A stretch of DNA of 63,063 nt, the filler included, from Hyphochytrium catenoides (lineage: Eukaryota > Protista > Hyphochytriomycota): the NCBI GenBank assembly GCA_900088475.1. It is 9 parts of 9 records of this genome, joined end to end, with 100 filler letters (N's around TTAATTAATTAA, not from the genome) between each part and the next. Parts side by side here need not be neighbours in the genome. Positions count along the whole stretch, not along the records: positions 29,015 to 49,891 come from FLMG01003331.1; 8 more parts are not named here. One strand, 5' to 3'. Each line of letters begins with the position of its first letter. The first letter of the stretch is position 1. A program made the translations under genes and the position numbers. Of this stretch, positions 29,206-49,991 are shown piece after piece. Under the pieces are notes generated by a model that did no database searches, was not told the DNA's origin, and saw only the letters and a program-made list of their open reading frames with translations.

Positions 29206-32103
29206 ATGCAGCGGTTTCTGGCTAGCCGGACCTTGGCCACGACGAGGTGAGTGACTCAATCGGCCTGTAAAGCTGGTGAATCCGTCTTTCGACTAGGTTT
29301 CTCTTCCCACTGACTGCAATATGTAGGCTTCCCCTACTGTTGAGGCACAGCTCCACCTCGACACAGAGCAAGCTTGCTCTCTTCGACAAGATTCTGATCG
29401 CCAATAGAGGAGAGATCGCCTGCAGAGTCATCAGGACGGCCAAGAAGCTTGGAATCAAGACTGTGGCTGTTTACAGTGATGCAGACCAAAATGCGATGCA
29501 TGTCAAGATGGTATGAAGAGAAGCCAACAGAGACGAAGAAATTGAATGACGAAGAGAGAGAGGATGCTCTAATCTCCTCTGACATCGTCCCCGTCTGTTC
29601 TCTTCTTTCTGGCCATTCCTTACCCTCTCTTCGGGCTCCTGTAACCGAGGCTTTCAGCATCCATCGCTTCTTCCCTGGAATTTTCTTCCATCACGTTCTT
29701 CCTGCGTATGTGTGCTGTCACACGGCTGTATGCCGCACTGTCATGCCTTTTGCAGTTCGTTGCCGGCCGTTGACTTTCCTCTTCCGCACTCCTGTTCTTT
29801 CATGACCTCTCTCTCACCGGCTGTCTGGTTTTGATCCATAGGCGGATGAGGCTTATCGTCTTGGTCCACCTCCTGCCTCAGAAAGCTACCTGCGAAAAGA
29901 CTTGATCATCGATATTGCGAAGCATAGCGGGGCCCAGGTCTGAGAAAGCAGCTTACGTGCTACCTTGGCTCAGTTCCGGCATCAACCTAGATTCTCTCTC
30001 TTTGCTCTCTCTCCTCTCTCTTCCTCACCTCTTTCTCTCTCTCACACTCTCTCTCTCTCGCACACTTGTGTCTCTCACTCCCTCTCACCTTCATTGCATC
30101 ATAGGCCATACATCCGGGCTATGGCTTTCTCTCAGAGAACTCTGACTTTTGCATTGCGTGTGCGAACGCTGGAATTGAGTTCATTGGCCCACCAGTGAAG
30201 GCTATCGTAGCGATGGGCTCGAAGAGCGCCTCAAAGGACATTATGCTCAACGCGAAGGTGCCTGTCACACCGGGTTACCATGGGGAGGACCAGAGTATTG
30301 ACACTTTACAAAGAGAGGCAGACAAGATGGGCTATCCGCTGATTTGCAAAGCTGTGATGGGAGGAGGTAACATTCTAGCTTCTGCCCTCGATGCCTTTGC
30401 ATCGCTATCTTTCTTATCTGATGGGCGCCCGCACCTCTTAGATAACCGTACACCTTGGACAGCCGGTCTCTTACTCGCCGCGTGGGTTTATGTTGCATCT
30501 GCCTACTCTCCTTTTGCAGTCTCTTCCCTGGTGACTCTATCCATTATAGCATACACTATATAATGAGACCTTACCTGCAGGCGGCAAGGGCATGCGCATC
30601 GTTTACTCAAGCGAAGAGTTCAGAGAAGCAGTAGAGTCCTGTCAGAGAGAGGCAAAATCCTCCTTTGGCAACACACGAGTCCTCTTTGAGCGATTTCTTA
30701 CCAAGCCCAGGCATATAGAGTTCCAGATCTTTGCAGACAAGCATGGGAACGCTGTACATCTCTTTGAAAGAGACTGCAGCACGCAAAGAAGGCACCAAAA
30801 GGTTTTGGAAGAGGCTACTGCCCCTCACATGTCTCATGAGTTGAGGAAGAAGATGGGAGATGCTGCGGTGGCTGCAGCTAAGGCTGTAGGTTACGTCGGA
30901 GCGGGGACGGTGGAGTTCATGCTGGACGAAGATGAATCTTTCTACTTTATGGAGATGAACACACGTCTACAGGTAGAGCATCCAGTAACAGAGATGATTA
31001 CAGGGCAGGACCTGGTGGAGTGGCAGCTTAAAGTGGCAGCCGGAGAGAAACTTCCTCTCACTCAAGAAGAGCTCTATGACGTAGCCGGGGGACATGCGAT
31101 AGAGGCAAGAATTTACGCCGAGAATCCCTACAAAGATTTCTTGCCTGGCACAGGCACTCTCTCCTTCATGGAAACCCCCGAGCCTAGCGAAGTAGTCAGA
31201 GTAGAGACTGGGGTTAGGCAAGGTGACGAAGTCTCCATCTTCTACGACCCGATGATCGCCAAGCTGATAGTGAAGGCAGACACCCGTCTTGAGGCTATCT
31301 CCCTTCTCAAAAAAGCTCTTAATGAGTTCAGGATAGTTGGACTGACGACTAACATTGAGTTCCTCCGCCGCACCCTCACCCATCCCCGGTTCCTGGAGGG
31401 CACAATCACTACGAATTTCTTAGATGAAGAGGGAGATCCTTTAACAACGCCGTTTGGCAAGGTCCCTACGAGTGGGCTTGCATTGACAGCTCTTGGACAA
31501 CTATTGAGGGACAGCAAACAGGCGAAGAAGCATGCAACAGGAGAAGTTTGGGCAGCTGATACTTTGGAGTCCTTTAGAGTGAATCACAATCTTAGCACTA
31601 AACTCTCATTCTTCGACGGAGGCGAGGAGGTGGTTATTGGTGCTGAATACTTAGGAGATGGCCAGTACAAGCTCACCATTCCAGGAGAGAAGGAAGCTCT
31701 GTTGGCAAAAGGAACTCTTTCTGATGATGGTACCCTCGTTGCCCGCATTGGGTGGCACAACTATGAAGGCAAGCTAGTGGCCCACAAGGATTCTCTCTAT
31801 ATGTTCGCCAATGATACGGATCTTAGGCACTTTTACAAGCTTGACCTTCCCAAGCCGACCTTCGGAGACGCCGCAGGCGCTAGCGGCAAGCCTACAATTG
31901 TGACCCCAATGCCTGGCAGGATTGTGAAAATCCTCGTCTCTCAAGGACAGAAGGTAAAGAAGGATCAGACAATGATCATCATGGAGGCCATGAAGATGGA
32001 ACATGCAGTCAGAGCGCCGAGCAATGGCAAGGTTGGTGAAATTTTTGTCGCAGAAGGAAGTCAGGTACCCGACGGGAAGGTTCTAGTGGAGTTGGAGAGC
32101 TAG
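29206..32103 (+). CDS. MCCC1: 3-methylcrotonyl-CoA carboxylase alpha (biotin-containing) subunit, mitochondrial, 5 exons
   Basis: Transit-peptide-like start [14 protein letters not shown], then [42 protein letters not shown]|[18 protein letters not shown] and [14 protein letters not shown]. The C-terminal biotinyl motif is IMEAMKMEH (MCC-type; PCC has MKMQN). Exons about 29206-29246, 29327-29510, 29842-29937, 30105-30366 and 30581-32103. Confidence 0.92.
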
Positions 32104-32879: not shown

Positions 32880-33686
32880 TCATCCCACATCCTCCGCCTC
32901 CATAGTCAGCTCCCGATAAGAAGCCATGAATGGTCCGTTCTTCCATTCCGTTGGGCCTGCCCAGTCGGGAAGAACCTTACCACCATCCCACACAGAGGAA
33001 TAGAGGTATGTGGGCTCCTTGATCAAGTCCAGACCGATCTCCTCTCGAATGAGCTGCCCATCAGCATACCATCGAATAGACTGGGAGGTAACCTCAAGAG
33101 TGTAGGTGTGGAAGTCGTCTCGGGTGTCAAAGCCTAGGTAATGCACCTTCTCCTTCCCACCAACGCCTTTCACATAGTAATTCGTCTGGACGTGGAAAGG
33201 ATCTTTCCCAAGGAACTCAAAGTCTATCTCATTCTGACGACCAGAGCCCTCCAGCGTGCTGGTATACAGCGTAGTTAGAATGCCACTGGTACTCTGTCTG
33301 TTGGCAGCAGCAGCTGCTTTGACCTTTCCGGAGACTCGAAAGGCCCCTTTGAGCCTTCTTGATGAGCGGATACGAGCGCCATCTTCGGCGGGGCTTCTGC
33401 TCATTATGTTTAGCGTCCCGGCGCCTTGAGCAGTGTTCTGGCTCCCGTAGTCGATGGCTAGGTGTTCATTAGGAATTGCTCTTCCCATATCAACGAAGGC
33501 TTTATACCTATACGACGGCGATGACTGTTCAGAAGCTGTTTCCATTGAGGAGATTGGAGCGCTTAGCCCGCGAAAGAGGTGGGAATCTGCGTCTGCAGCG
33601 TTTCCAGACACAAGTAGACATATAACGACCAGTCCGCATTTGGCGATGGAAGGGAAAGAAGACGTTGGGACGGATAACAGCTTCAT
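32880..33686 (-). CDS. Secreted GH16 endo-beta-glucanase (EG16/XTH/licheninase-like), intronless
   Basis: Hydrophobic signal-like N-terminus (CGLVVICLLVSGNAADA). Catalytic QNEIDFEFLGKD, then VQTNYY, LGFD..DDFHTY, IRWYADG and LYSSVWD..DWAG. No XTH C-terminal extension. Confidence 0.92.
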   Translation of the reverse strand: MKLLSVPTSSFPSIAKCGLVVICLLVSGNAADADSHLFRGLSAPISSMETASEQSSPSYRYKAFVDMGRAIPNEHLAIDYGSQNTAQGAGTLNIMSRSPAEDGARIRSSRRLKGAFRVSGKVKAAAAANRQSTSGILTTLYTSTLEGSGRQNEIDFEFLGKDPFHVQTNYYVKGVGGKEKVHYLGFDTRDDFHTYTLEVTSQSIRWYADGQLIREEIGLDLIKEPTYLYSSVWDGGKVLPDWAGPTEWKNGPFMASYRELTMEAEDVG

Positions 33687-36600: not shown

Positions 36601-37853
36601 AGCATTGTAATCTACGCCAAGAGTGAGGAGCGGAGAGAACGTGATCATCCCTCCGTTTACCTCGATTAGCCCCGCTCACATCAGCGACGTGAAGACGTAC
36701 CAATTTGTAACATGAGCCCAGAAGATGTGGGTTGGCTCCGAGGTTGGCTCCGAGTCTGACAGTTGAAGGAGAGGGAAGCCGAAGCAAAAAGGGATCCTGG
36801 AGGTCAAGTCAGCAGCCTTCTAAGTCTACTTCCTATCAACATCCACGACGACTCATACTTCGGAGTTTCCTTTGCTTTATGATGTGAAGATGTGAAGATC
36901 TTTCGAGCGTTATTATGATTATGATGAGCAGATCTTCCAGACCATGGTCTAAGATAAGCTCGAGCGTTAGCGGCTCCTTGATTGTGTCCAGCCGTCTACA
37001 AGGAAGGGAGAGGAGAACGAAGCTGGACAGACGAAGGCGAAGAGTCACACACCCGCCACCAACACGGGAAAGAAAGAGAGACTGAAATTACCTCTGCCCT
37101 CCCTCAACCCAAGAAGCATACCTCTCAGCACTCACTGAGAGAGCCAGATTCGATTTACTCCTTAGTTAACACGTAAGCTTTTAGGGACAGACATAAACAA
37201 AAATTGTTACTCTGTCTCCGGAGCATGGCCTTTCATTATCTCCCTATAATGAGCGGAATGACCAATAAAGAGAGGAAAGGAAGGAAAGAAAGGACATCAA
37301 GCCTGTGTAAGCACGTGAGTCAGACGGGTAATTTACGCAGCTCGAAAGATTCAATAGATCATCGGGAAAGTTTGAAGTGTCATCCATTTGTTCTGGAATA
37401 AAATACTTAAAGATGGCTTGGCTGGTGATGAAATCTTTCGTCTTGTCTCATCTAAGGGTTTTTTGGGTGTCTTTTCTCGTGCTGTTCAGTTCTGATCTTC
37501 CCTCTATCCTTATTCGAGAGAAAGACGAGGGTTATCCGTTATCGGTGCACTCCTGGCGTACTGTTTCTATTATCTGTACTGTAGGGCTTTAAATGTTTGT
37601 CTTTGCGCATCATCAGAAACCATTTCAGGAGCTTCGAAGACTCTCAGTCGACGAAATTCAGAGCTGCAGATGGAGATTCAAGCATCACGGTTCTGATGGT
37701 GCGGGACTAGCCCCCGTAATAAGGTTCTAACGCTCATTGGCAGAAGCGGATACTCTGCTCATAGGCCTCTTGGGCCGTTTACGTGGTCTCAATCTTGATA
37801 TTGTTGGTTTAGTGGACAGTCACGAGCTGCTGGATGCAGCAACAATAGCAAAG

Positions 37854-40800
37854 ATGAGTAACACATATGTGAAGCAGCATAGTCTGGATAAGTTTAATTT
37901 TGCGGCAGCTGATTTTGACGAAGCTTTGGAGGAAGGTAAGCTGAGAGTGGAGTTTGTTGCCTCTGCTGTTTATCTGACTTTGGGATCTCCGCTTATTTGC
38001 CCAGAGCTGCTTCGGGGTTTATCCGAATCAGACTTGTTGAAGGGTGTGAACGGCGGCATCCCGGAGTACTTGATAGCACACACCTCTCGGACCGCAGAAG
38101 CGGACGGCGGATTTAAGTCACCCCGTACATCAGAGGAAGGGTCGTCGTCAGAAGTCGAAGAACAACTCTCAGAAACAAAGTCTATGCAACTACCAGACCA
38201 AAACTCCCGTTGTGGCAATACAGCTCCCGAGAAAGGGAAGCGGGCGCCCGGAGGGAAGGTAATGAAAGCTGAGGGTTCTGCTCATAAGCTCTTGAAAGAA
38301 ACTCTAACATTTGGCATTCGCCAGACCTCCATCTATCGTGGTGTCACCAAGACAAGTCTAAAGGCTTGGGGCGCCAAGTATAATGCCAAGAGATTGACGA
38401 GTACGTGCAAGACAGAGGAGGAGGCAGCTAGAGTCTATGACGATTATCTCCGGACGAATGTGCCCGACAAGTACATGAAGTATTGCAACTTCTGTCCTCA
38501 GTGTGGCAAATTCAGGAACTCCTTACGCCTTCCCAACGTCCAAAAGGATTGCCGTTGCGAAGATCACATCATGCACGCTGACAATGCCTCTACCTATGGG
38601 AGCGACGGGTTCGAGTCTTCAGGTTACACGACATCGTCACCTGCTTATTCTAGCCCTCCCTATAGCTCGCCGCTGCCACCTCCCTTGGACCCTGTGGAGG
38701 AGAATATGCAGCTGCCCCCGCCTGCTCCATACAATGAGGTCTACAAGTCGGAGGCTGAACCTTTACCCACTCAGGGAATGACAGCAATGGGAAATAATCT
38801 TGGTGGAGCTCTCCCTCAGAATAATAATGCAGAGCGGATATCGGACCTTATAGGGATGCGAGATGACCTGGACGAGCTTCTTTTTAACTCTACTGGCAAA
38901 GCGGAGTACCTCCTGAATATGGTCCCAGCGATGCCATCTTTTCCTGTCTCAGAAACCGTATCATCGTCCGGTATAAACACGACAACGGTGGTGATGGCGC
39001 AGGAGAGAAAGACTTCATATCTTGAGCCTAGTCCGCAGAACGCCATTACAAGTGATCAGCAGGCGTATCCTATCACCGCAGAAGCTCTTTATACAAGCCA
39101 GCTTTACCCTGCGCAGATCCATCCTGATCAGTTATCTACTAATCTCAACAAGATGATCAAGCAGGAAAGCTCAGATGAAATTGATAAGATCATCAGCCAG
39201 ATCACACACTCAGAAACAGGACACCAGGCCCTTTTCGACCAAACTCAAGGTCGAGGAAACGCTGTTGACTGCATCGCACAATCTCAGCCTTCCTTCCCAG
39301 TGGCTCTCGCAACCATCACTTTTACGAACCAGTTCAGGCCCAAATATTGGCGGAATGATCGGAAAAATGTGCAGTGTTTCCCCTATTGCCCTGAGTTTGG
39401 CGATTACTTCAACGCAAGAGTCCAGAACCTGAAGCATGAAAGTAAAGGTGTCTGCAGAGCCGAAGTAACAGTTGACGTTACAATGACCCCAGACCTTCAA
39501 GCCGAAAGACTTGTTGTTCTCGGCCAGTTTACCGCCGAGAATGCGCCTGACCACTTTCAGGGCCAGTTTTGGCCTCCTAACATGCTGGAGCTTCTGCGGA
39601 CCACGTGGATTACCGGCACATGCAAGGCCTCCTTCCTCTCGGAATCAGGCAATATGACGGCGTCCTATGGCTTCCTTGCGCTAAATTGGAAGTATGAGGA
39701 ACAGCTGCCAAAGAACAAGAAGCGGCGGTTGCCTAACGAAGTAGACGAAGATGAAAGGAAGTATGTCTTCCGCGTGGAAGCCTTCTATCTTAGAGATGAT
39801 GGGATGTATGTGTGGGTCAATTGCCGTGATTCTCCAGCGTTCGAGTTCGGCAGTACGCGTACTTTATTGAGACATCGGAACCGGCTGGAGGATGACAAGC
39901 AAGAATTAGCTACAACACTAGCGGGCGTAAGCATGGACGAGAATGACATTCTCGCGATGGACGAGGCTCTGCACGTTCGAGAGAGTACGATGGCTCATAC
40001 GCTATCAGCTGAACCTGTACCATCGAAGAAGAAGATCAAGATGAAGCTCAATCAAGCAGGCGCACAGAAGTCGAGCGGCGAAGGTAGGGCCTATCCATGT
40101 AGCAGAGTAGTAGAAAAAGCCATTTGCTTATTGATTCACCGACCGACTATTGCTCCGCCCGTTGTAGACATTGGAGAACTAGAAGAAGGCATTACTTCAA
40201 AGTATGACGCACACACATCGCCCAAGGAGGTTTTGCCGAAGGCAGCTACGCACTCCACAGGAAGAAACCTTCCGGAGGTTCCTACGGTCAAGTCTGGAGG
40301 AGACAACACAACGAAAGTGGACGGCAGAGGCCCTTCACTTGCGGTGTACGGCCTTCTGCTAAACCCTCTATTCGCGGTGCTTTCTGCAGTAGTGTTTATG
40401 CTGTAAGTAGTTTGACCTTGAGATATATGCTTACTAGTCCCTGAAATGCTGACCATCTCTCTTGCTTTCGCCTCTTCGATTTTACCTTTGAGCAGCTTAA
40501 CACCACTGTCGTTATTGGGCTTGGCAGCCTGCGGGCTTGGACGCAGTTTTGTACTGGTAGAGGTTGATCTGTTGGACACCTTCGGCCAATGGGACCTGCG
40601 GATGATCAATTTCCTTCGATCCAGTTCCCTTGCAGTTCTCGTCTTACGGCGAATAGAGCTTCAAGGGGAAACTTCCCAAGCCCGGAGCAAAAATGCGTTT
40701 CAAGACTCTGTTGTGACAAAGCGCTTGTGGTACTTCATGCTGGGCAAGCTTGTCCTAAGCATAGTGACGTTCTGTCTCTCTGCACCTCTAACTATCCTTT

Positions 40801-40928
40801 ACGTCATCACTTGCTGCATTCCTGGCCTTGGGCGAGCCTCGGAAGGTGCTCTCCGGAGTGCGGTGCTGCTATCCGTAAACTATTCGCTGAAGGCACTGGA
40901 CCAGACGGAAACTGCCCTGCCTGTGTAG
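37854..40928 (+). CDS. AP2-like DNA-binding protein with a second conserved Cys/His-containing domain and C-terminal transmembrane segments
   Basis: AP2-like TSIYRGVTK..KAWGAK...TEEEAARVYD followed by CxxC...CxC at about 38320-38560. Conserved-looking domain KYWRNDRKNVQCFPYCPE...KYVFRVEAF...SPAFEFGSTR at about 39340-39870. Intron 40403-40495 joins ORF 37737-40406 to ORF 40446-40928, giving hydrophobic helices. Probable in-frame introns at 37936-38004 and 40084-40167. Confidence 0.75.
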
Positions 40929-41506: not shown

Positions 41507-42095
41507 TCAAGCTGCTGGTTGAACTCTGGACACACTGAGAGAGAAGAGATTCCCCTGAGGGTTCATGTTGGTGTACGCCACAGGCGCAGGAGGAAGAGAG
41601 AAAGTGAAAGCCTTGGGCTTATACAACCCAGAGTTTGTCCGTAACAGCTCAGCCTTCCTCGGCGTCTTCATTCCAGAGTTCTCTATCGCCTGAACAACAA
41701 GGTTGAACTGCTCTTCGCATTCATCTAAGTCTGGCTTTCTTCGCATGTCGTCTGAGCTTTTGAAATAATACCGCTGCCAAGTGAGGAAAGCAAGGCCCCA
41801 TTCGTTCCTTAGCTTCTTGGTGTATGCACCCAAAACGACTGTCTTTTTGTCCTCCAGACGCACNNNNNNNNNNNNNNNNNNNNNNNNNNNNNNNNNNNNN
41901 NNNNNNNNNNNNNNNNNNNNNNGAGTCTGCAAGTGGTCTGACCTTGGTCTTCGCCCCCGTTAGCTCGATTTCTCCCAACCACACGCCACCGGGCTTGCGA
42001 AAGTAGCGAAATTTGCCGTTGTCAAGCACGCCATACACAGGTTCAGCATACTTCTTTTCCAGGTCATATCGAATAAGATAGCCTTCCTTCACCAT
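41507..42095 (-). CDS. PH-domain protein (spans an internal N gap)
   Basis: MVKEGYLIRY...YGVLDNGKFRYF...LGEIELTG...(gap)...VVLGAYTKKLRNEWGLAF, which has the PH strands and the C-terminal Trp helix. Confidence 0.72.
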
Positions 42096-43558
42096 CGTTG
42101 AGCTTGGGCAGCCTCTCGTCAAGCAGAGACAAATGAGGTTTCCTTCGACACGCGGGCTATACTGCGGGAGCTCTGCACGCCACTTGGATGAATAGAGTTG
42201 GCGGCTGGCAAGTATGCAGAGCAAAGCGCCTCTCTTCCAACAATGGAGCTCTGTGTAACAAAAGGCTCCTATACTTTCCTAGCAGTGTCGCAGAAGAGTC
42301 GAAAGAGATGCAGACTCTGCCTTCGTGTGAAGCTCTGTGACGTGTATCAAAGGCGCAGCAGAAAAAGTGATTGTCTACCCCTGCAACACGGTGCTTCTAG
42401 GAGAGTTCTGTGGGGTATGTTCTCTTTTTTCTTATCTCTTCTGAAGCTGCAGCCTCCTCGTCTCTTGGCGCTGCTGCTTCATGATCTTCTTCCTCCCTCT
42501 GCTTCTGTCTCTCTGAAATCCAAAGTCAGTCTGTCTCTCTCGCAGTATATCTCTTCTCTCTCTCTTTCGCTCTCTGTCTTCTCTGTCTCTCTTCTTAACT
42601 CATCTTATAAACACTTAGTCGGTATCTCGCTCCTCTCTGTTTCGCTCTCTGTCTATCTGTCTCTCTTCTTATCTGTGTCTCTGCACACAAGGCCCAGGGC
42701 CTATCATGACGCGATGTTATTCCTTGTGATGGCGGCGCAGAGTATCTTGGGACTGTGGATGATGCAGGGCGGACCATCACCCCTCGCTCTAAATATAACA
42801 CAGGCATAGACATCAGGAGCCATGGGTCTTGAGTGAGGCCCAAAGCCCCAGTAACAGTCAGAAAGACCACAAGTATACAAATATCTCAGGTAGAATAAGT
42901 GTCTCAATGACTGATATAAATCTTGTCAGTTGTCTGCCCATTGTGAAAAAAACTGACAGAAATGGGCAAGAGAAAGAGGAACAAAATAGAGCGACAATTG
43001 TAGGACAATTCTTGCTGCAAGGTCAGACCAAACTTTTTTTCTTTGTGACCAGTGACCAACCCCCAAACTTTGGACGCTCTTTTTCTCCTGTCCTGCCCCC
43101 TTCCTCTCTCTCACTCTCTTCTCTCTCTGTGTACAAGGCAGTGGTCTGTATCTATAAGCCGAACACCATCGTTTATTACAACTCAGGCACTCTATATAAA
43201 GGACGGCCTTACGCTAAGTATAAGGTCGTATTATTATAGCTAAGAATTACAGAAGGTCGTGAATGGCCTGGGAGCGATACAGAAGCAGTTTCCACACTGA
43301 CTCTTACTGACAACTGTTAGATAACCAGGTATTGTCGTATTATTAGCGCTTGCTCTAGATTCTATGTTTGCTTAACGCTATATACGACCTTCATGGAGAC
43401 TATTGACGGTAGAGTAAAGCATAGTCCTCCCAATATTCTCGCACAGACGGCGCCAATGTTGATCCGTGAATTGAGCTCAGCTCCAGAGCTTCATAGAGAT
43501 TATCGGCAGATCTGTGAAGCTCGACCTTTCTATTTTTCAAAAAAAAAGAGTTTGAGCC

Positions 43559-45192: not shown

Positions 45193-48100
45193 TCATCGTG
45201 AGGTCATGAGCAATGAGCCAACATATCCAATGAGACTTCTGAAGCGAGAGAGGCCATAGAGAAGGGAGAAAGAAACGCCGTAGCAGTAGACTGGCAGCAG
45301 CAGGAGTTTTCCGCTATAGCTTGACCTCTCAGCCATTTTCCACGCAGCAGCGGAGGCAAGAAAGGAAAGCGACCACTTGATCGTCCTTCTCCTTTGTCTT
45401 CTTAGAGCAGGAAGAGTGCTAAGTGCAGGAAGAAGGCCAAGACTCCAAGCCAGGCTACCCGCCTTACTTCGTCTCCCTTCCTTCCTCACTACATTCCTCA
45501 CTACCGTCTTCGACACTTCATATAGGGAGGAGAGGACAATGTACGGAGACGAGACTCTCAGGACCGAGAAGAGAAGGTTGATTAGGACGAACGAAGCATT
45601 CATCACTGAGAGATCGAAGAGGACATATACGGCAACCTCGTTCCATTCCGTCTGGTTGGCCACTTGATCTTTCACGTAGCCCAAGACAATGTTTGGGATA
45701 GATTGAGTGAATAGCCGCAGGATGGTAAGACCTCCGCCCCACGTGAAGATACCTCTTGTTAGGCACGCTTGGATGGTGGAAGGCTGACGCAATACCTGAT
45801 AACGGGAGTGTACGTATGAGCATGACAGAAGAAACGGACGAGAAGAGTAGCTGGACTAGTAGTGATAGAGAGGAAAGACCCTTATACATTGGGCTGTTGA
45901 TACTCAAACAGAGCACTAAGGGCCACCGAGGAAGTCAGATAGAAGAGTAAACATTGGAGTCTATATGGGAACGAAATGTGACTGTTCCGGAAACTGGAAA
46001 CCCTGGGTCCCACAGAGGGAAGAAAACGCAAGGCAGCACTATCAACACAAGGGTAAGGGCATAGCAATCCATACTCGTAGCGTTTCTCGGCACCACTCTC
46101 CCAGGGCCTCCCTCCTCAGAGGTAACGGCATAGAAGACAGAGGAAGCAGATAGCACAAGGGATGCAATTGCCGCTTGTAGGCAACCTTCCAGTACCGACA
46201 GCCAAACTCTGAGACTTCAAAATCAATATCAGTAAGGGCATCAAGACGAAAGAGAGATCTTAAGCAGCGCTGAGAGGAAGCTATCGACAAGCTCAGCCTG
46301 TCTGATGCCAGCACAGAAAGTATGCACGAGCCGCATGGAAAAGAACGTACTAGGCAGCAGGACACAAAACAACAGATCCAAGTGCGGACAGTATGACGAA
46401 GAAAGAGAGCTCTGGATGACACAAAGGTACAATGCAACTGGTGGACGAGTTGGAAAAAGAGAGACCAATACTCCTCACTTAGTTGGTCACTGGACTGTCT
46501 AAGGAATGCAAGCAGTGCTTGAGCAGCCTGTGAACAGAGATCAGAGCAGTGCAGACGTCATGTAGACAAAGGCCCCACAGATCTGACTCTCTCTCTTCTT
46601 CTCAGCGGAGTGAGTGAGGAAATACTTCCTTTGTCGTGCTAGTATATGGAGCTCTCAGGCGGTACCGTCCACTTTATGTTAGCGTATTTTGACTTTGCAT
46701 CTCTTAGATGTCCTAGCGTCTCACCTGAAGGCTCCTATCTCCCGTTTCTTCTTCTGCTGTCCTCAGAAGAAATTCGATGAATCCTCTTCTGAGCAGAGCG
46801 AAACACGTAAGGTTGTCGAATAGTTCTCCCTAACGGGAAGTAACAGCGTTAGCAACCAAGAGTGAGGTTCAAGCGTGGGTTATAAGAGAAGAGACATTGG
46901 GAAGAGAGCGGCAGGAGCAGAACAGACCGTCAGCAACAGCTGGCCAACGACCTCTAGGTCCGCCTCCTCAGCCGATAACGCCGTAAGAGAAAGGTTCACG
47001 GGCGCCAAAGGATTAGTGTCCACAAAAAGCACCTGCATGCGAAGAGGACGATAGACATCAGCGTGCATCGCGCCATCAATAATATCAGGGAGTTCAATCC
47101 CGTAAAGTTGAGTTCTGCCAGCTGCAGATGAGGAAGCTTTGCAAAGCACTGCTAAAACCAGGCATAAGAGAGCTGATTGGCTAGTGCCACTGCGATAAGC
47201 AGTAGGGCGAGGGAAAGGTGTTACCTCAATACCTCACAAGCCGAGGATCAAGAGAGAGTCAGGGAACAGAGAAGTGGGGATAGCCCGCACAGTAGACACG
47301 ACGAACTTCTACAACGAGTAAGGAGAAACCTTGGAGCTAGCGGAGAGAGCAATAGGAGCAACCTGTAGAAAGGTCCTTCCGTCGACTAGATTCTCATGGG
47401 CAAGCTCCCAGCGCTGGTTCCTCAGCGTCAGAGATAACTTCCAGCGACCCAGACTGCGGAAAGAGCGCACAGGGCAAACAATAAAGAACAAATGAAAGCA
47501 GAGATGAGAAGTTGAGCGCCCGAGCGGAAGAGTATATAAAGTACTATAGGAAAAGGAATGGAGAGGGAGTACGAGCGCGCAGTAAAGAGAGCACCGGGAA
47601 GGAAAGGGGATAACCAAGGGACGTATCAAAGGAGTGAGTCAGCATAGAGGCAACGACAAAAGGCGAGAAGCGAGTCAGTGCAACTTACCGGCCTCCAGCT
47701 GTATCAAAGGGCACCAGCTCATGCAAATTGTTCGGTGGAAGCTCGTCATCTCCCCTTACTCCCAGAAGTGAGCCGGAGGTGCACTCCAGTAGATCAAAGT
47801 CCTGAGCCAACGACAAGCGAGAGACAGGGAGAGACAACGAAAGAGATGGGAAACCAGGCGAAGAGAGAGAAAAGGCAGTGCCAGGGAAGTAGGCGTAGTG
47901 AGAGCCAGCGGTGAGGGGAGAGACTGCCGCTGGTGCAGACCTCAAAGACAGACAGAGACTGAGAGAACCTGATGTACCTTCATCTGATAGCCGTCAAATT
48001 CTTCCTGAGCCGCTCTGCCCAATAAAAAAGATAAGCGCTTGAGTGCAAGTTCATGATTGACAAGAGAAAGGAAAGAGCAGGAGAGAAAGAAGCCAGAAGA

Positions 48101-49121
48101 GAGAACAGAAGAGAAAGACGGCGGAAGCCCCACAGAGAGGTAGGCGACAGAGCTTTTGCCATCACGGTTCGCACATTATAGACCAGCATAGCAGGAGAAA
48201 GACCGAGCCTCCACAATGACGAGAGATGGGGAAGAGACAAAAGCAGAAGAGACCTAATCTTCCTCTTGATAGTGTAGCGGTCGTCGCTTATCCTCAAAGT
48301 AACGTTGACAATGCCGCCAGAGAGAAGCAACACCCGGATCGTTGCCTCGCCTCTAACCATCTTTCGTACCATAAGGAACCAATACTTAGCAGGAACTGCA
48401 GAGATGGGGCCAAGGAGGGAATATGATGGCAGGGCAGGAGAAAGAAGGTGAGTACAAAGAGCAAGAGAGAGAGAGAGAGAGAGTAAGAAGGAAAGAGAGT
48501 AGAGAGAGCGCGAGAGAGAAAAAGAGGGAGATTGAGAGAAAGAGAGAAAGATAGCGAGAGAGAAAAAGAAAGAATGAAAGTACCGAGATCGCGAGAGAGA
48601 AAAAGAGGGAGAGAGAGGCTGAGAGAGAGAAAACGAGAAAGAGAGAGAAAGAGTTAGGGGAGGGAGGGAAGAGAAAGGGTGAATGACAGAGAGGAGAACT
48701 GACCAGTAGGGGAGAGGGAGGAAGTCAAAGAAAGAGAAGCATCCGCAGAAACATGAGACAGGAAGCCTCAAAAGAGGCTTCTTCCCATCCCTCGACCCAG
48801 AAGTGAGTGTGACGGAGCAAGAGATAGCAATCTGTCTCCTTATAAGGAGAAAGATCCACAAAGAGAGTTTTCCTGTCCCTCTTTCCTCCTCTTAGACTCG
48901 CCATCACTCACCCTTTTCGTCTTTTCCTTCTCCTCCCTCCACCGCTGGGTAGGAGCAACGGCGGTATAGCTCGTGCCAGACTGAGTTGGAGAGACAAGGG
49001 CTCCGTAGAGCCTGACAAGTTGCCGCCAACCGGCCCAACTCTCGAACTACAGACGCATCGAGAGGCATGAGATGTCAGGGATGGCAAAAGTAAGCAGAAA
49101 GAGAGAGAGAGAGAAAAAGAG

Positions 49122-49163
<42 letters not shown>

Positions 49164-49589
49164 AAGGAGGAGAAGGAGAGAGAAACAGGGAGTAACGGGG
49201 AGGAGAGAGAAAGAAAGAGGGAGAGGGAGAGAAAAGAAAAAAGAGGCAACGCGAAAGAGTGCGGGACAGTTAGGGATAAAGAGGTAGGAGAGAGAGAGAG
49301 AGGAGAGGAGTGAAAGAGACCATAGGGAGAAGGGAAGGCAAGGCGGAAGGAGGCAGACCGTTTGCGGCCAGAGTTGGAGAGGACAGAGCCAAGCGGGCGC
49401 GCTCTTACCTCCACAGAAGGACAGAAGATAGAGGAAAGCATCTTGACAGCTCTCATGCACCTTCTCCAGAGTCAAAGTGCGGCCCTCAACAGCGGCAGCG
49501 CTGTCTCCTAAGGAGGGGAGAAGACACACCGTGGGCGAGAGAGAGACATCGGGCCAATAGACAGCGGCCGAGTAAAGCTCCGCCTCCAT
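45193..49589 (-). CDS. Probable F-box protein with a multi-pass hydrophobic C-terminus (many exons; single-gene model tentative)
   Basis: Exon 49589-49409 spliced to the exon starting at 49046 gives LEKVHESCQDAFLYLLSFCG|VRELGRLAATCQALRSPCLSNSVWHELY (F-box-like). More GT-AG-bounded exons follow at about 48400-48260, 47800-47690, 47150-46960 and 46530-46435. The last segment, 45193 to about 45790, has several hydrophobic stretches. Confidence 0.55.
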
Positions 49590-49991
49590 AGCTCTGTCTC
49601 TGTATGCTCTGTAGGAGAAGAACTTATGACCATATGGAGAGTGCCGCAAGCTCTCTCAGAAGATGGCTCCCAAAGAAGAGACACAGAAGAGATCCAGGAC
49701 GGAAGGCAGAGAGAACGAAGAGAAGCGGCGCTAATAATGTGAGACACATGAGAGACGCTAGCAAAGGGGCGAGCAGGGGCGGTCCTTTTGGAAAGAGGAG
49801 GGTGAGCAAGGGGTATGATGAGAAAGGGTCGGAGAGCACAAGAGTGCAAGAGAGAGAAAGGAGAGAAAGAAAGAGGGAGAGAGAGAGAGAGNNNNNNNNN
49901 NNNNNNNNNNNNNNNNNNNNNNNNNNNNNNNNNNNTTAATTAATTAANNNNNNNNNNNNNNNNNNNNNNNNNNNNNNNNNNNNNNNNNNNN

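Follow-up and report, generated by a model that had tools for sequence, protein, structure and literature searches.

A candidate membrane-anchored AP2 protein of Hyphochytrium catenoides and its oomycete relatives

We analyzed a gene at positions 37854-40928 (+ strand) of a 63,063-nucleotide stretch of DNA (the window) from Hyphochytrium catenoides (assembly GCA_900088475.1). The window joins nine records of this genome, and the gene lies in the part taken from FLMG01003331.1 (29,015-49,891). Its predicted product combines a divergent AP2 domain with a new immunoglobulin (Ig)-like domain, referred to below as D2, and a polytopic hydrophobic tail, and comparison of the sequences indicates that this three-part architecture is conserved. 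A DNA-binding-type domain and transmembrane segments thus stand within one polypeptide, in contiguous open reading frames (ORFs) in the homologues and in parts joined by a predicted intron here. On the evidence of sequences and structural models, we lean toward the reading that this ~990-residue protein is a membrane-anchored transcription factor of an undescribed family, centered on oomycetes and related stramenopiles, and that its N-terminal part would be released and imported. An earlier note on this DNA had proposed a dual DNA-binding, membrane-sensing regulator; the architecture was borne out, and DNA binding by D2, sensing, and release stay at the level of prediction. Membrane-bound transcription factors and AP2 domains are known already. 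The new element is the combination of AP2 plus a Cys4 knuckle, an Ig-type domain, and a two-hairpin anchor; neither this combination nor a layout of AP2, D2, and membrane anchor in AP2 proteins was found in the literature, coverage of which was incomplete.

The longest ORF of the piece runs on the + strand from 37737 to 40406, with its first ATG at 37854. The coding part of exon 1 (37854-40402) comprises 850 codons including a split Leu codon, and its frame closes with a TAA at 40404-40406; a consensus donor, G/GTAAGT, overlaps this stop, 40402 being the last exon base. A CAG at 40493-40495, behind a pyrimidine-rich tract and 93 bases past the donor, provides the acceptor of a predicted 93-nt, phase 2 intron (40403-40495). 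Exon 2 (40496-40928) is open from the acceptor and adds 143 codons and a TAG stop (40926-40928); the phases agree, with CT from exon 1 and C from exon 2 forming the Leu codon. The junction was placed by these signals and by comparison with homologues; searches used the exon 1 and exon 2 products separately, or homologues, and the tail was examined via the homologue P0001, described below. Exon 2 matched the family's hidden Markov model (HMM) of the tail at 40563-40898 (E 1e-30), and in the tail alignment exon 1 ends and exon 2 begins within the first hairpin of intron-less homologues. These matches are the main evidence that exon 2 belongs to the gene, and homologues without the intron carry the same tail uninterrupted. 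Introns of the GT...CAG type are normal in this genome, because the neighboring methylcrotonyl-CoA carboxylase alpha gene has a comparable one of ~213 nt, seen when its two ORFs are aligned to an oomycete orthologue.

Signals, phase, and colinear intron-less homologues all agree with the single spliced gene and the 40402/40496 junction that the earlier note had predicted. We regard it as highly improbable that exon 2 is a separate transcript and that the protein ends at the TAA at 40404-40406. In favor of that view, the junction is read from sequence, and the ORF is complete without splicing, with a 23-residue hydrophobic segment at its end. Against it, exon 2 is homologous to exactly the part of the family tail that lies beyond the stop point of exon 1, homologues encode the tail in one ORF, and donor and acceptor are canonical and keep the phase. 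Two other acceptors were rejected: 40492/40493 would add one Ser, and 40546/40547 would lose 17 amino acids and leave hairpin 1 far shorter than in homologues. The best fit is the CAG ending at 40495, preceded by a pyrimidine tract. Retention of the intron would give an 850-aa protein ending in the single 23-residue hydrophobic segment, resembling a tail-anchored protein rather than a soluble one. In plant bZIP60, alternative splicing removes the anchor, whereas a retained intron here would keep one hydrophobic segment.

A word-index search detected one relative, P0001, an 826-aa protein from a Logan assembly encoded by a single uninterrupted ORF (L001 205-2685; E 3e-55). It shares 59% identity with the H. 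catenoides protein over the AP2-like region and Cys motif (together AP2Zn) and 35% over ~200 residues of the second domain, and it ends in two long hydrophobic blocks, so that AP2Zn, D2, and tail occur in one ORF. P0001 and the two exon products, each entered as its own row, made up a profile that was searched against 1.84 billion cluster representatives; it retrieved 127 proteins at E<=1e-3, and 93 of these passed E<=1e-10. Such matches, like that to P0001, go far beyond what chance would give. Architectures were sorted with HMMs for AP2Zn, D2, and tail. At least 9 cluster representatives, plus fragments, had all three modules; ~70 had D2 without AP2Zn, and ~40 had AP2Zn without D2, some of the latter with 2-4 canonical AP2 repeats. 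Named full-length members came from Pythium insidiosum, Hyaloperonospora brassicae, Achlya hypogyna, and Albugo candida and are annotated as hypothetical or "transmembrane protein," in line with the earlier mention of similar oomycete hypotheticals; the full layout, tail included, is kept in these oomycetes. D2-only paralogues were found in Pythium oligandrum, Phytophthora megakarya, and MMETSP transcriptomes. The exon products and domain pieces matched no Pfam family apart from a chance hit to DUF1525 (E 0.13). A 382-aa Ser/Thr kinase (Pkinase) gene lies convergent behind P0001 (L001 2931-4079, - strand) and is absent beside the H. catenoides gene, and synteny is therefore not conserved.

The first domain is a true though divergent AP2 domain by profile and model, and sequence-specific DNA binding is predicted for it. 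The domain (38322-38492; three strands and a helix) includes the AP2-like stretch YRGV...EEAARVYD at amino acids (aa) 159-200 of exon 1. To guard against circularity, a profile (A5) was built from 29 members of the CxxC...CxC subfamily only. Against PDB it matched TEM1 (3.8e-5), WRI1 (1.4e-4), ERF096 (2.7e-3), and, more weakly, AtERF1 (E 0.06-0.09); five of the seven chains at E<=1, including the top three, were AP2 domains. The single AP2Zn sequence gave only chance matches to CDC25 in PDB. The AlphaFold model of the domain, with a predicted local distance difference test score (pLDDT) of 88, has a three-stranded antiparallel sheet packed on one helix, and the first seven Foldseek matches to it were all AP2. 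Behind the helix follows N-F-C-x2-C-x15-C-x-C (CxxC-x15-CxC at 38493-38558; C214, C217, C233, and C235), a putative zinc knuckle with all four Cys in 24 of the 29 subfamily members and a pLDDT of 81-95. An AP2-like domain with an adjacent CxxC...CxC motif had been claimed beforehand, and the profile, model, and Foldseek matches support it. Compared with plant AP2/ERF domains (PF00847; AtERF1, TEM1, WRI1), the H. catenoides domain is sub-threshold in Pfam, its subfamily has T-x-T-C in strand 3 in place of the canonical LG.F (that Cys occurs in 27/29 members), and a C4 knuckle is fused to its C-terminal helix, in addition to D2 and the membrane anchor. The family profile also drew in a wider set of 68 domains, of which 30 matched PF00847 (best E 4.8e-13), mostly in canonical multi-AP2 proteins. 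Five of the proteins retrieved in this way (P0083, P0095, P0101, P0109, and P0122) have 3-4 tandem canonical AP2 domains and form a link between the divergent AP2Zn subfamily and PF00847. The literature does contain counts of AP2 domains in Phytophthora.

By its fold, D2 (39309-39893; aa 486-680) comes closest to the Ig sandwiches of Rel homology domain (RHD), velvet, and STAT factors, to which it may be homologous, and it is a candidate second DNA-binding domain. No Pfam family matched it at E<=10, and neither a 63-sequence profile (nothing under E 1) nor the single sequence gave a significant match among PDB sequences. A word-index search with D2 alone returned no relatives, though this search also missed the known homologue P0001. 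The AlphaFold model from the 63-sequence alignment (pLDDT 93; predicted template modelling score 0.87) is a beta sandwich with short helices, in which the final strand (S..F...STR, aa 660-669) leads into a long helix. Foldseek returned no match to this model at E<=1e-3; its top rows were STAT3/5/1, VosA/VelB velvet, NFAT, and p53/Cep-1. The top structural neighbors were VosA (Z 7.8), NFAT and RelB (7.6), p52 and VeA (7.5), and STAT (7.0-7.1), with Z always <8. These DNA-binding Ig domains aligned over 113-141 residues, against 83-115 for most generic Ig domains. In an ESM-Atlas shape search, a cluster of oomycete hypothetical proteins reached a template modelling score of 0.76, and the STAT, NDT80, and MYRF clusters 0.44-0.51. 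The Ig-type fold expected in the earlier note thus appeared in the model, with velvet, RHD, and STAT as the best structural neighbors, and the C-x3-C...H-x5-C motif and SPAFEFGSTR-type terminal strand were found where they had been described. RHD N-domains (NF-kB, NFAT, TonEBP) and fungal velvet domains (VosA, VeA) share no sequence similarity with D2, and unlike NF-kB-type RHD proteins, the H. catenoides protein has no IPT/TIG domain behind D2.

A nucleic-acid role for D2 is supported by its Cys/His cluster and conserved basic positions. The putative zinc site (39375-39455), C508-x3-C512...H528-x5-C534, is conserved across the 63 D2 sequences (C508 98%, C512 95%, H528 73%, and C534 95%); the RHD and velvet families are not known for such a cluster. 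Lys or Arg is kept in >=78% of these sequences at twelve positions, including the KNKKRR loop (39711-39728; aa 620-625), where it is kept at aa 620 (84%), 624 (81%), and 625 (95%); pLDDT is lower in this stretch (70-82). The loop may be a nuclear localization signal (NLS) or a DNA-contact loop. The motif had earlier been read as an NLS; it is present, but as a conserved loop inside D2 and not as a separate linker NLS. By analogy with RHD and velvet domains, we infer that D2 would bind zinc and would either bind DNA or mediate dimerization.

The linker between D2 and the tail is poorly conserved outside two motifs. P-x-KKK-[IVL]-[KR] (aa 723-731; P-S-KKK-I-K-M-K at 40020-40046) occurs in all 11 aligned full-length members, ~40-150 aa ahead of the anchor, and is conserved better than KNKKRR; it is likely an NLS, on the transcription-factor side of the anchor. 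The second motif, [VIT]-S-P-[KR] (S-P-K at 40218-40226), is shared by 7 of these 11 in the alignment, an eighth having S-P-D, and is possibly a proline-directed phosphorylation site.

The protein ends in hydrophobic helices, as the earlier note had stated, and Kyte-Doolittle analysis resolved them into two hairpins shared by the homologues. Hairpin 1 (40335-40559; ~45 aa, maxima 2.1 and 1.6) is split by the intron and measures 37-44 aa in homologues; an inter-hairpin loop with a conserved D...L..N core (40560-40721) separates it from hairpin 2 (40722-40841; ~40 aa, maximum 2.24), which opens with R-x-x-Y...K. In exon 1 the hydrophobic stretch covers aa 828-850, and exon 2 contributes residues 1-21 and 76-115; together they form two ~40-residue blocks, each with a central Pro or Gly, with ~55 residues between them. 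All members with a tail have two hydrophobic blocks of 29-47 aa, ~35-60 aa apart. In the inter-hairpin block LD.LSD.EL..AN, L and N are kept in >=90% of members, and R, Y, and K of the hairpin 2 start (R..Y....K) are nearly invariant. The sequence pattern is compatible with four membrane passes or two re-entrant wedges. The N-terminal part has no signal peptide, and hydropathy analysis showed no hydrophobic segment before aa 825; because of this, the N-terminal part should face the cytosol or nucleoplasm. The N-terminal domains, inter-hairpin loop, and C terminus would then share one, presumably cytosolic, side.

The tail gave no significant match among PDB sequences. Its loose resemblance to the bacterial putative sensor PF13796, suggested earlier, does exist: the P0001 tail scored 20.8 bits (E 4.4e-4; model positions 8-124 of 162), and both have two hydrophobic hairpins with a ~50-aa spacer, a feature that is not family-specific. 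Membership was not supported, since this best score is below the gathering threshold of 28.2, and only two of 14 tails reached E<=0.1; the P0068 tail gave E 0.11, and the other tails and the H. catenoides exon pieces gave no match. Identity as a divergent TM2 domain (PF05154) was likewise rejected, with an hhalign probability of 0.06% against the TM2 anchors of other D2 proteins. P0068 (318 aa) has a two-hairpin tail without AP2 or D2. Language-model look-alikes of the tail were oomycete "transmembrane protein" clusters (0.78-0.83), 10% of whose members carry PF13796, a finding that serves as a lead only. These look-alikes suggest more stand-alone oomycete "transmembrane proteins" (228-318 aa) with the tail module, and the two-hairpin anchor may be an independent domain family.

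D2 also occurs with another anchor. Pfam detected TM2 at the C terminus of 11 of the 53 other D2 proteins scanned (best E 7.6e-36), and an independent iterative search gave the same 11. In the D2 tree, ten of the 11 TM2-bearing proteins fell in one supported clade (99/91), and the AP2-D2-tail proteins, including that of H. catenoides, grouped apart with weak support (83/48); for the latter grouping, one change suffices in 100% of bootstrap trees. Because the two-hairpin and TM2 anchors are unrelated, D2 must have acquired a membrane anchor on two or more occasions. It is possible, and we propose this tentatively, that D2 is an unrecognized stramenopile-centered class of zinc-containing, RHD/velvet-like Ig-fold DNA-binding domains, fused at least twice independently to unrelated anchors (the four-helix tail and TM2) to give membrane-to-nucleus signaling factors specific to oomycetes and their relatives, of which the AP2-D2-tail protein would release two DNA-binding domains together.

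In the mechanism that we consider, the protein would be held at an endomembrane (endoplasmic reticulum or nuclear envelope), and a membrane-derived cue would lead to freeing of the N-terminal part. Release could occur through a cut within the poorly conserved linker or close to it. Alternatively, the proteasome could process the protein partially and halt when it meets the folded D2, in the manner of yeast Mga2/Spt23 and NF-kB p105. Nuclear import of the freed part would be directed by the conserved KKKxK motif. The closest systems in logic are MYRF/MrfA, SREBP, Mga2/Spt23, and plant NTL/bZIP28, and the protein belongs to none of these families. MYRF and Dictyostelium MrfA combine an NDT80-type Ig-fold DNA-binding domain with an ICA autoprocessing domain and a transmembrane segment. 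Pfam scans gave no NDT80_PhoG, Peptidase_S74, or MYRF_ICA match, and instead of the one-helix anchor of MYRF/MrfA, the H. catenoides protein has two hairpins and an additional AP2 domain. SREBP and Mga2/Spt23 are cytosol-facing transcription factors on C-terminal membrane segments; the SREBP anchor is a two-helix hairpin, and Mga2/Spt23 have an Ig-like domain and a processing that stops at a folded domain. Their DNA-binding domains are others (bHLH-Zip in SREBP; IPT with ankyrin repeats in Mga2/Spt23), no homology to the H. catenoides protein was detected, and unlike them, it has no regulatory C-terminal domain past the anchor.

Several results weigh against a released membrane-anchored transcription factor. 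From D2 to the anchor, a Pfam scan found no protease or autoprocessing domain, and there is no recognizable cleavage site; moreover, S1P and S2P do not classically act on polytopic anchors whose hairpins have hardly any luminal loop. Pfam gave no AP2 match for the H. catenoides AP2 region, and P0001 scored only 13-14 bits against PF00847 (E 0.05-0.12), far under the gathering threshold of 33.3 bits. The splice junction that joins the two exons is, as said above, drawn from the DNA and its homologues. Finally, D2 needs no membrane: 47 D2 proteins extend for >=60 residues beyond D2, and hydrophobic segments are present in 24 of these and absent from the other 23, about half. The missing protease domain and the very short loops of the polytopic anchor would also suit a DNA-binding protein that stays in the membrane permanently and escapes cleavage, such as one in the inner nuclear membrane by which particular loci are attached to the nuclear envelope. 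Yeast Heh1/Heh2 reach that membrane via an NLS and a disordered linker ahead of transmembrane segments, and the H. catenoides protein has a KKKxK motif, then a poorly conserved linker, then hairpins. However, the distance between the NLS and the anchor (~40-150 aa) is in several members below that of long Heh2-type linkers, and the protein has no LEM, SUN, or other nuclear-envelope domain; we consider such a resident tether unlikely.

It also seems rather improbable that AP2 alone reads DNA and that D2 is an Ig-like module for protein interaction, dimerization, or ligand binding, a view compatible with tethering. The Z scores below 8 and the absence of a significant Foldseek match leave room for such a role, but the top-ranked and longest structural alignments of D2 are to Ig domains of transcription factors, and D2 is rich in conserved Arg/Lys and has the Cys/His cluster. 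Moreover, ~70 D2 proteins have no other recognizable DNA-binding domain, which would be odd for an accessory module, though not decisive. Release of a transcription factor from the membrane is the reading that we hold to be the more plausible one.

Oomycetes are major pathogens of crops and animals, and to our knowledge few of their transcription factors have been characterized. No membrane-tethered transcription factor was found described for oomycetes in the literature, within an incomplete coverage. The family ranges over Albugo, Saprolegniales, Peronosporales, and the deeper-branching H. catenoides, which suggests an ancient regulatory pathway through which the state of the membrane could influence transcription. 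D2 comprises ~80 cluster representatives without a Pfam family; if it binds DNA, it would form a new branch of the Ig-fold transcription-factor superfamily beside RHD, velvet, STAT, p53, and NDT80. The hypothesis is directly testable in transformable Phytophthora species.

Other features were observed around the gene. The methylcrotonyl-CoA carboxylase alpha (biotin carboxylase) gene lies at 30195-32103 (+ strand), with its intron at ~30368-30580 and its 5' part probably upstream of 30195. Its best named relatives are in oomycetes, with only 51-55% identity to every sampled oomycete order, a distance that probably places the genome in a stramenopile lineage akin to the sampled oomycetes, either outside them or deep among them. 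A 99%-identical copy, P0141, is present in a Logan assembly. At 32880-33686 (- strand), a 268-aa ORF with a hydrophobic, signal-like N terminus and a glycoside hydrolase family 16 domain (Pfam E 6e-28) probably encodes a secreted beta-glucanase. Two overlapping ORFs at 41507-42224 (- strand) are broken by an assembly gap of ~60 N near 41865-41930, which makes the gene model unreliable; they gave no Pfam match on either side of the gap. The long minus-strand "SLSLSL" ORFs at 47500-49650 were rejected as genes and regarded as repeat artefacts. The + strand of this region is purine-rich, with GC skew up to 0.32 and AT skew up to 0.5, and contains imperfect AG microsatellites at 48464-48653 and 49096-49232.

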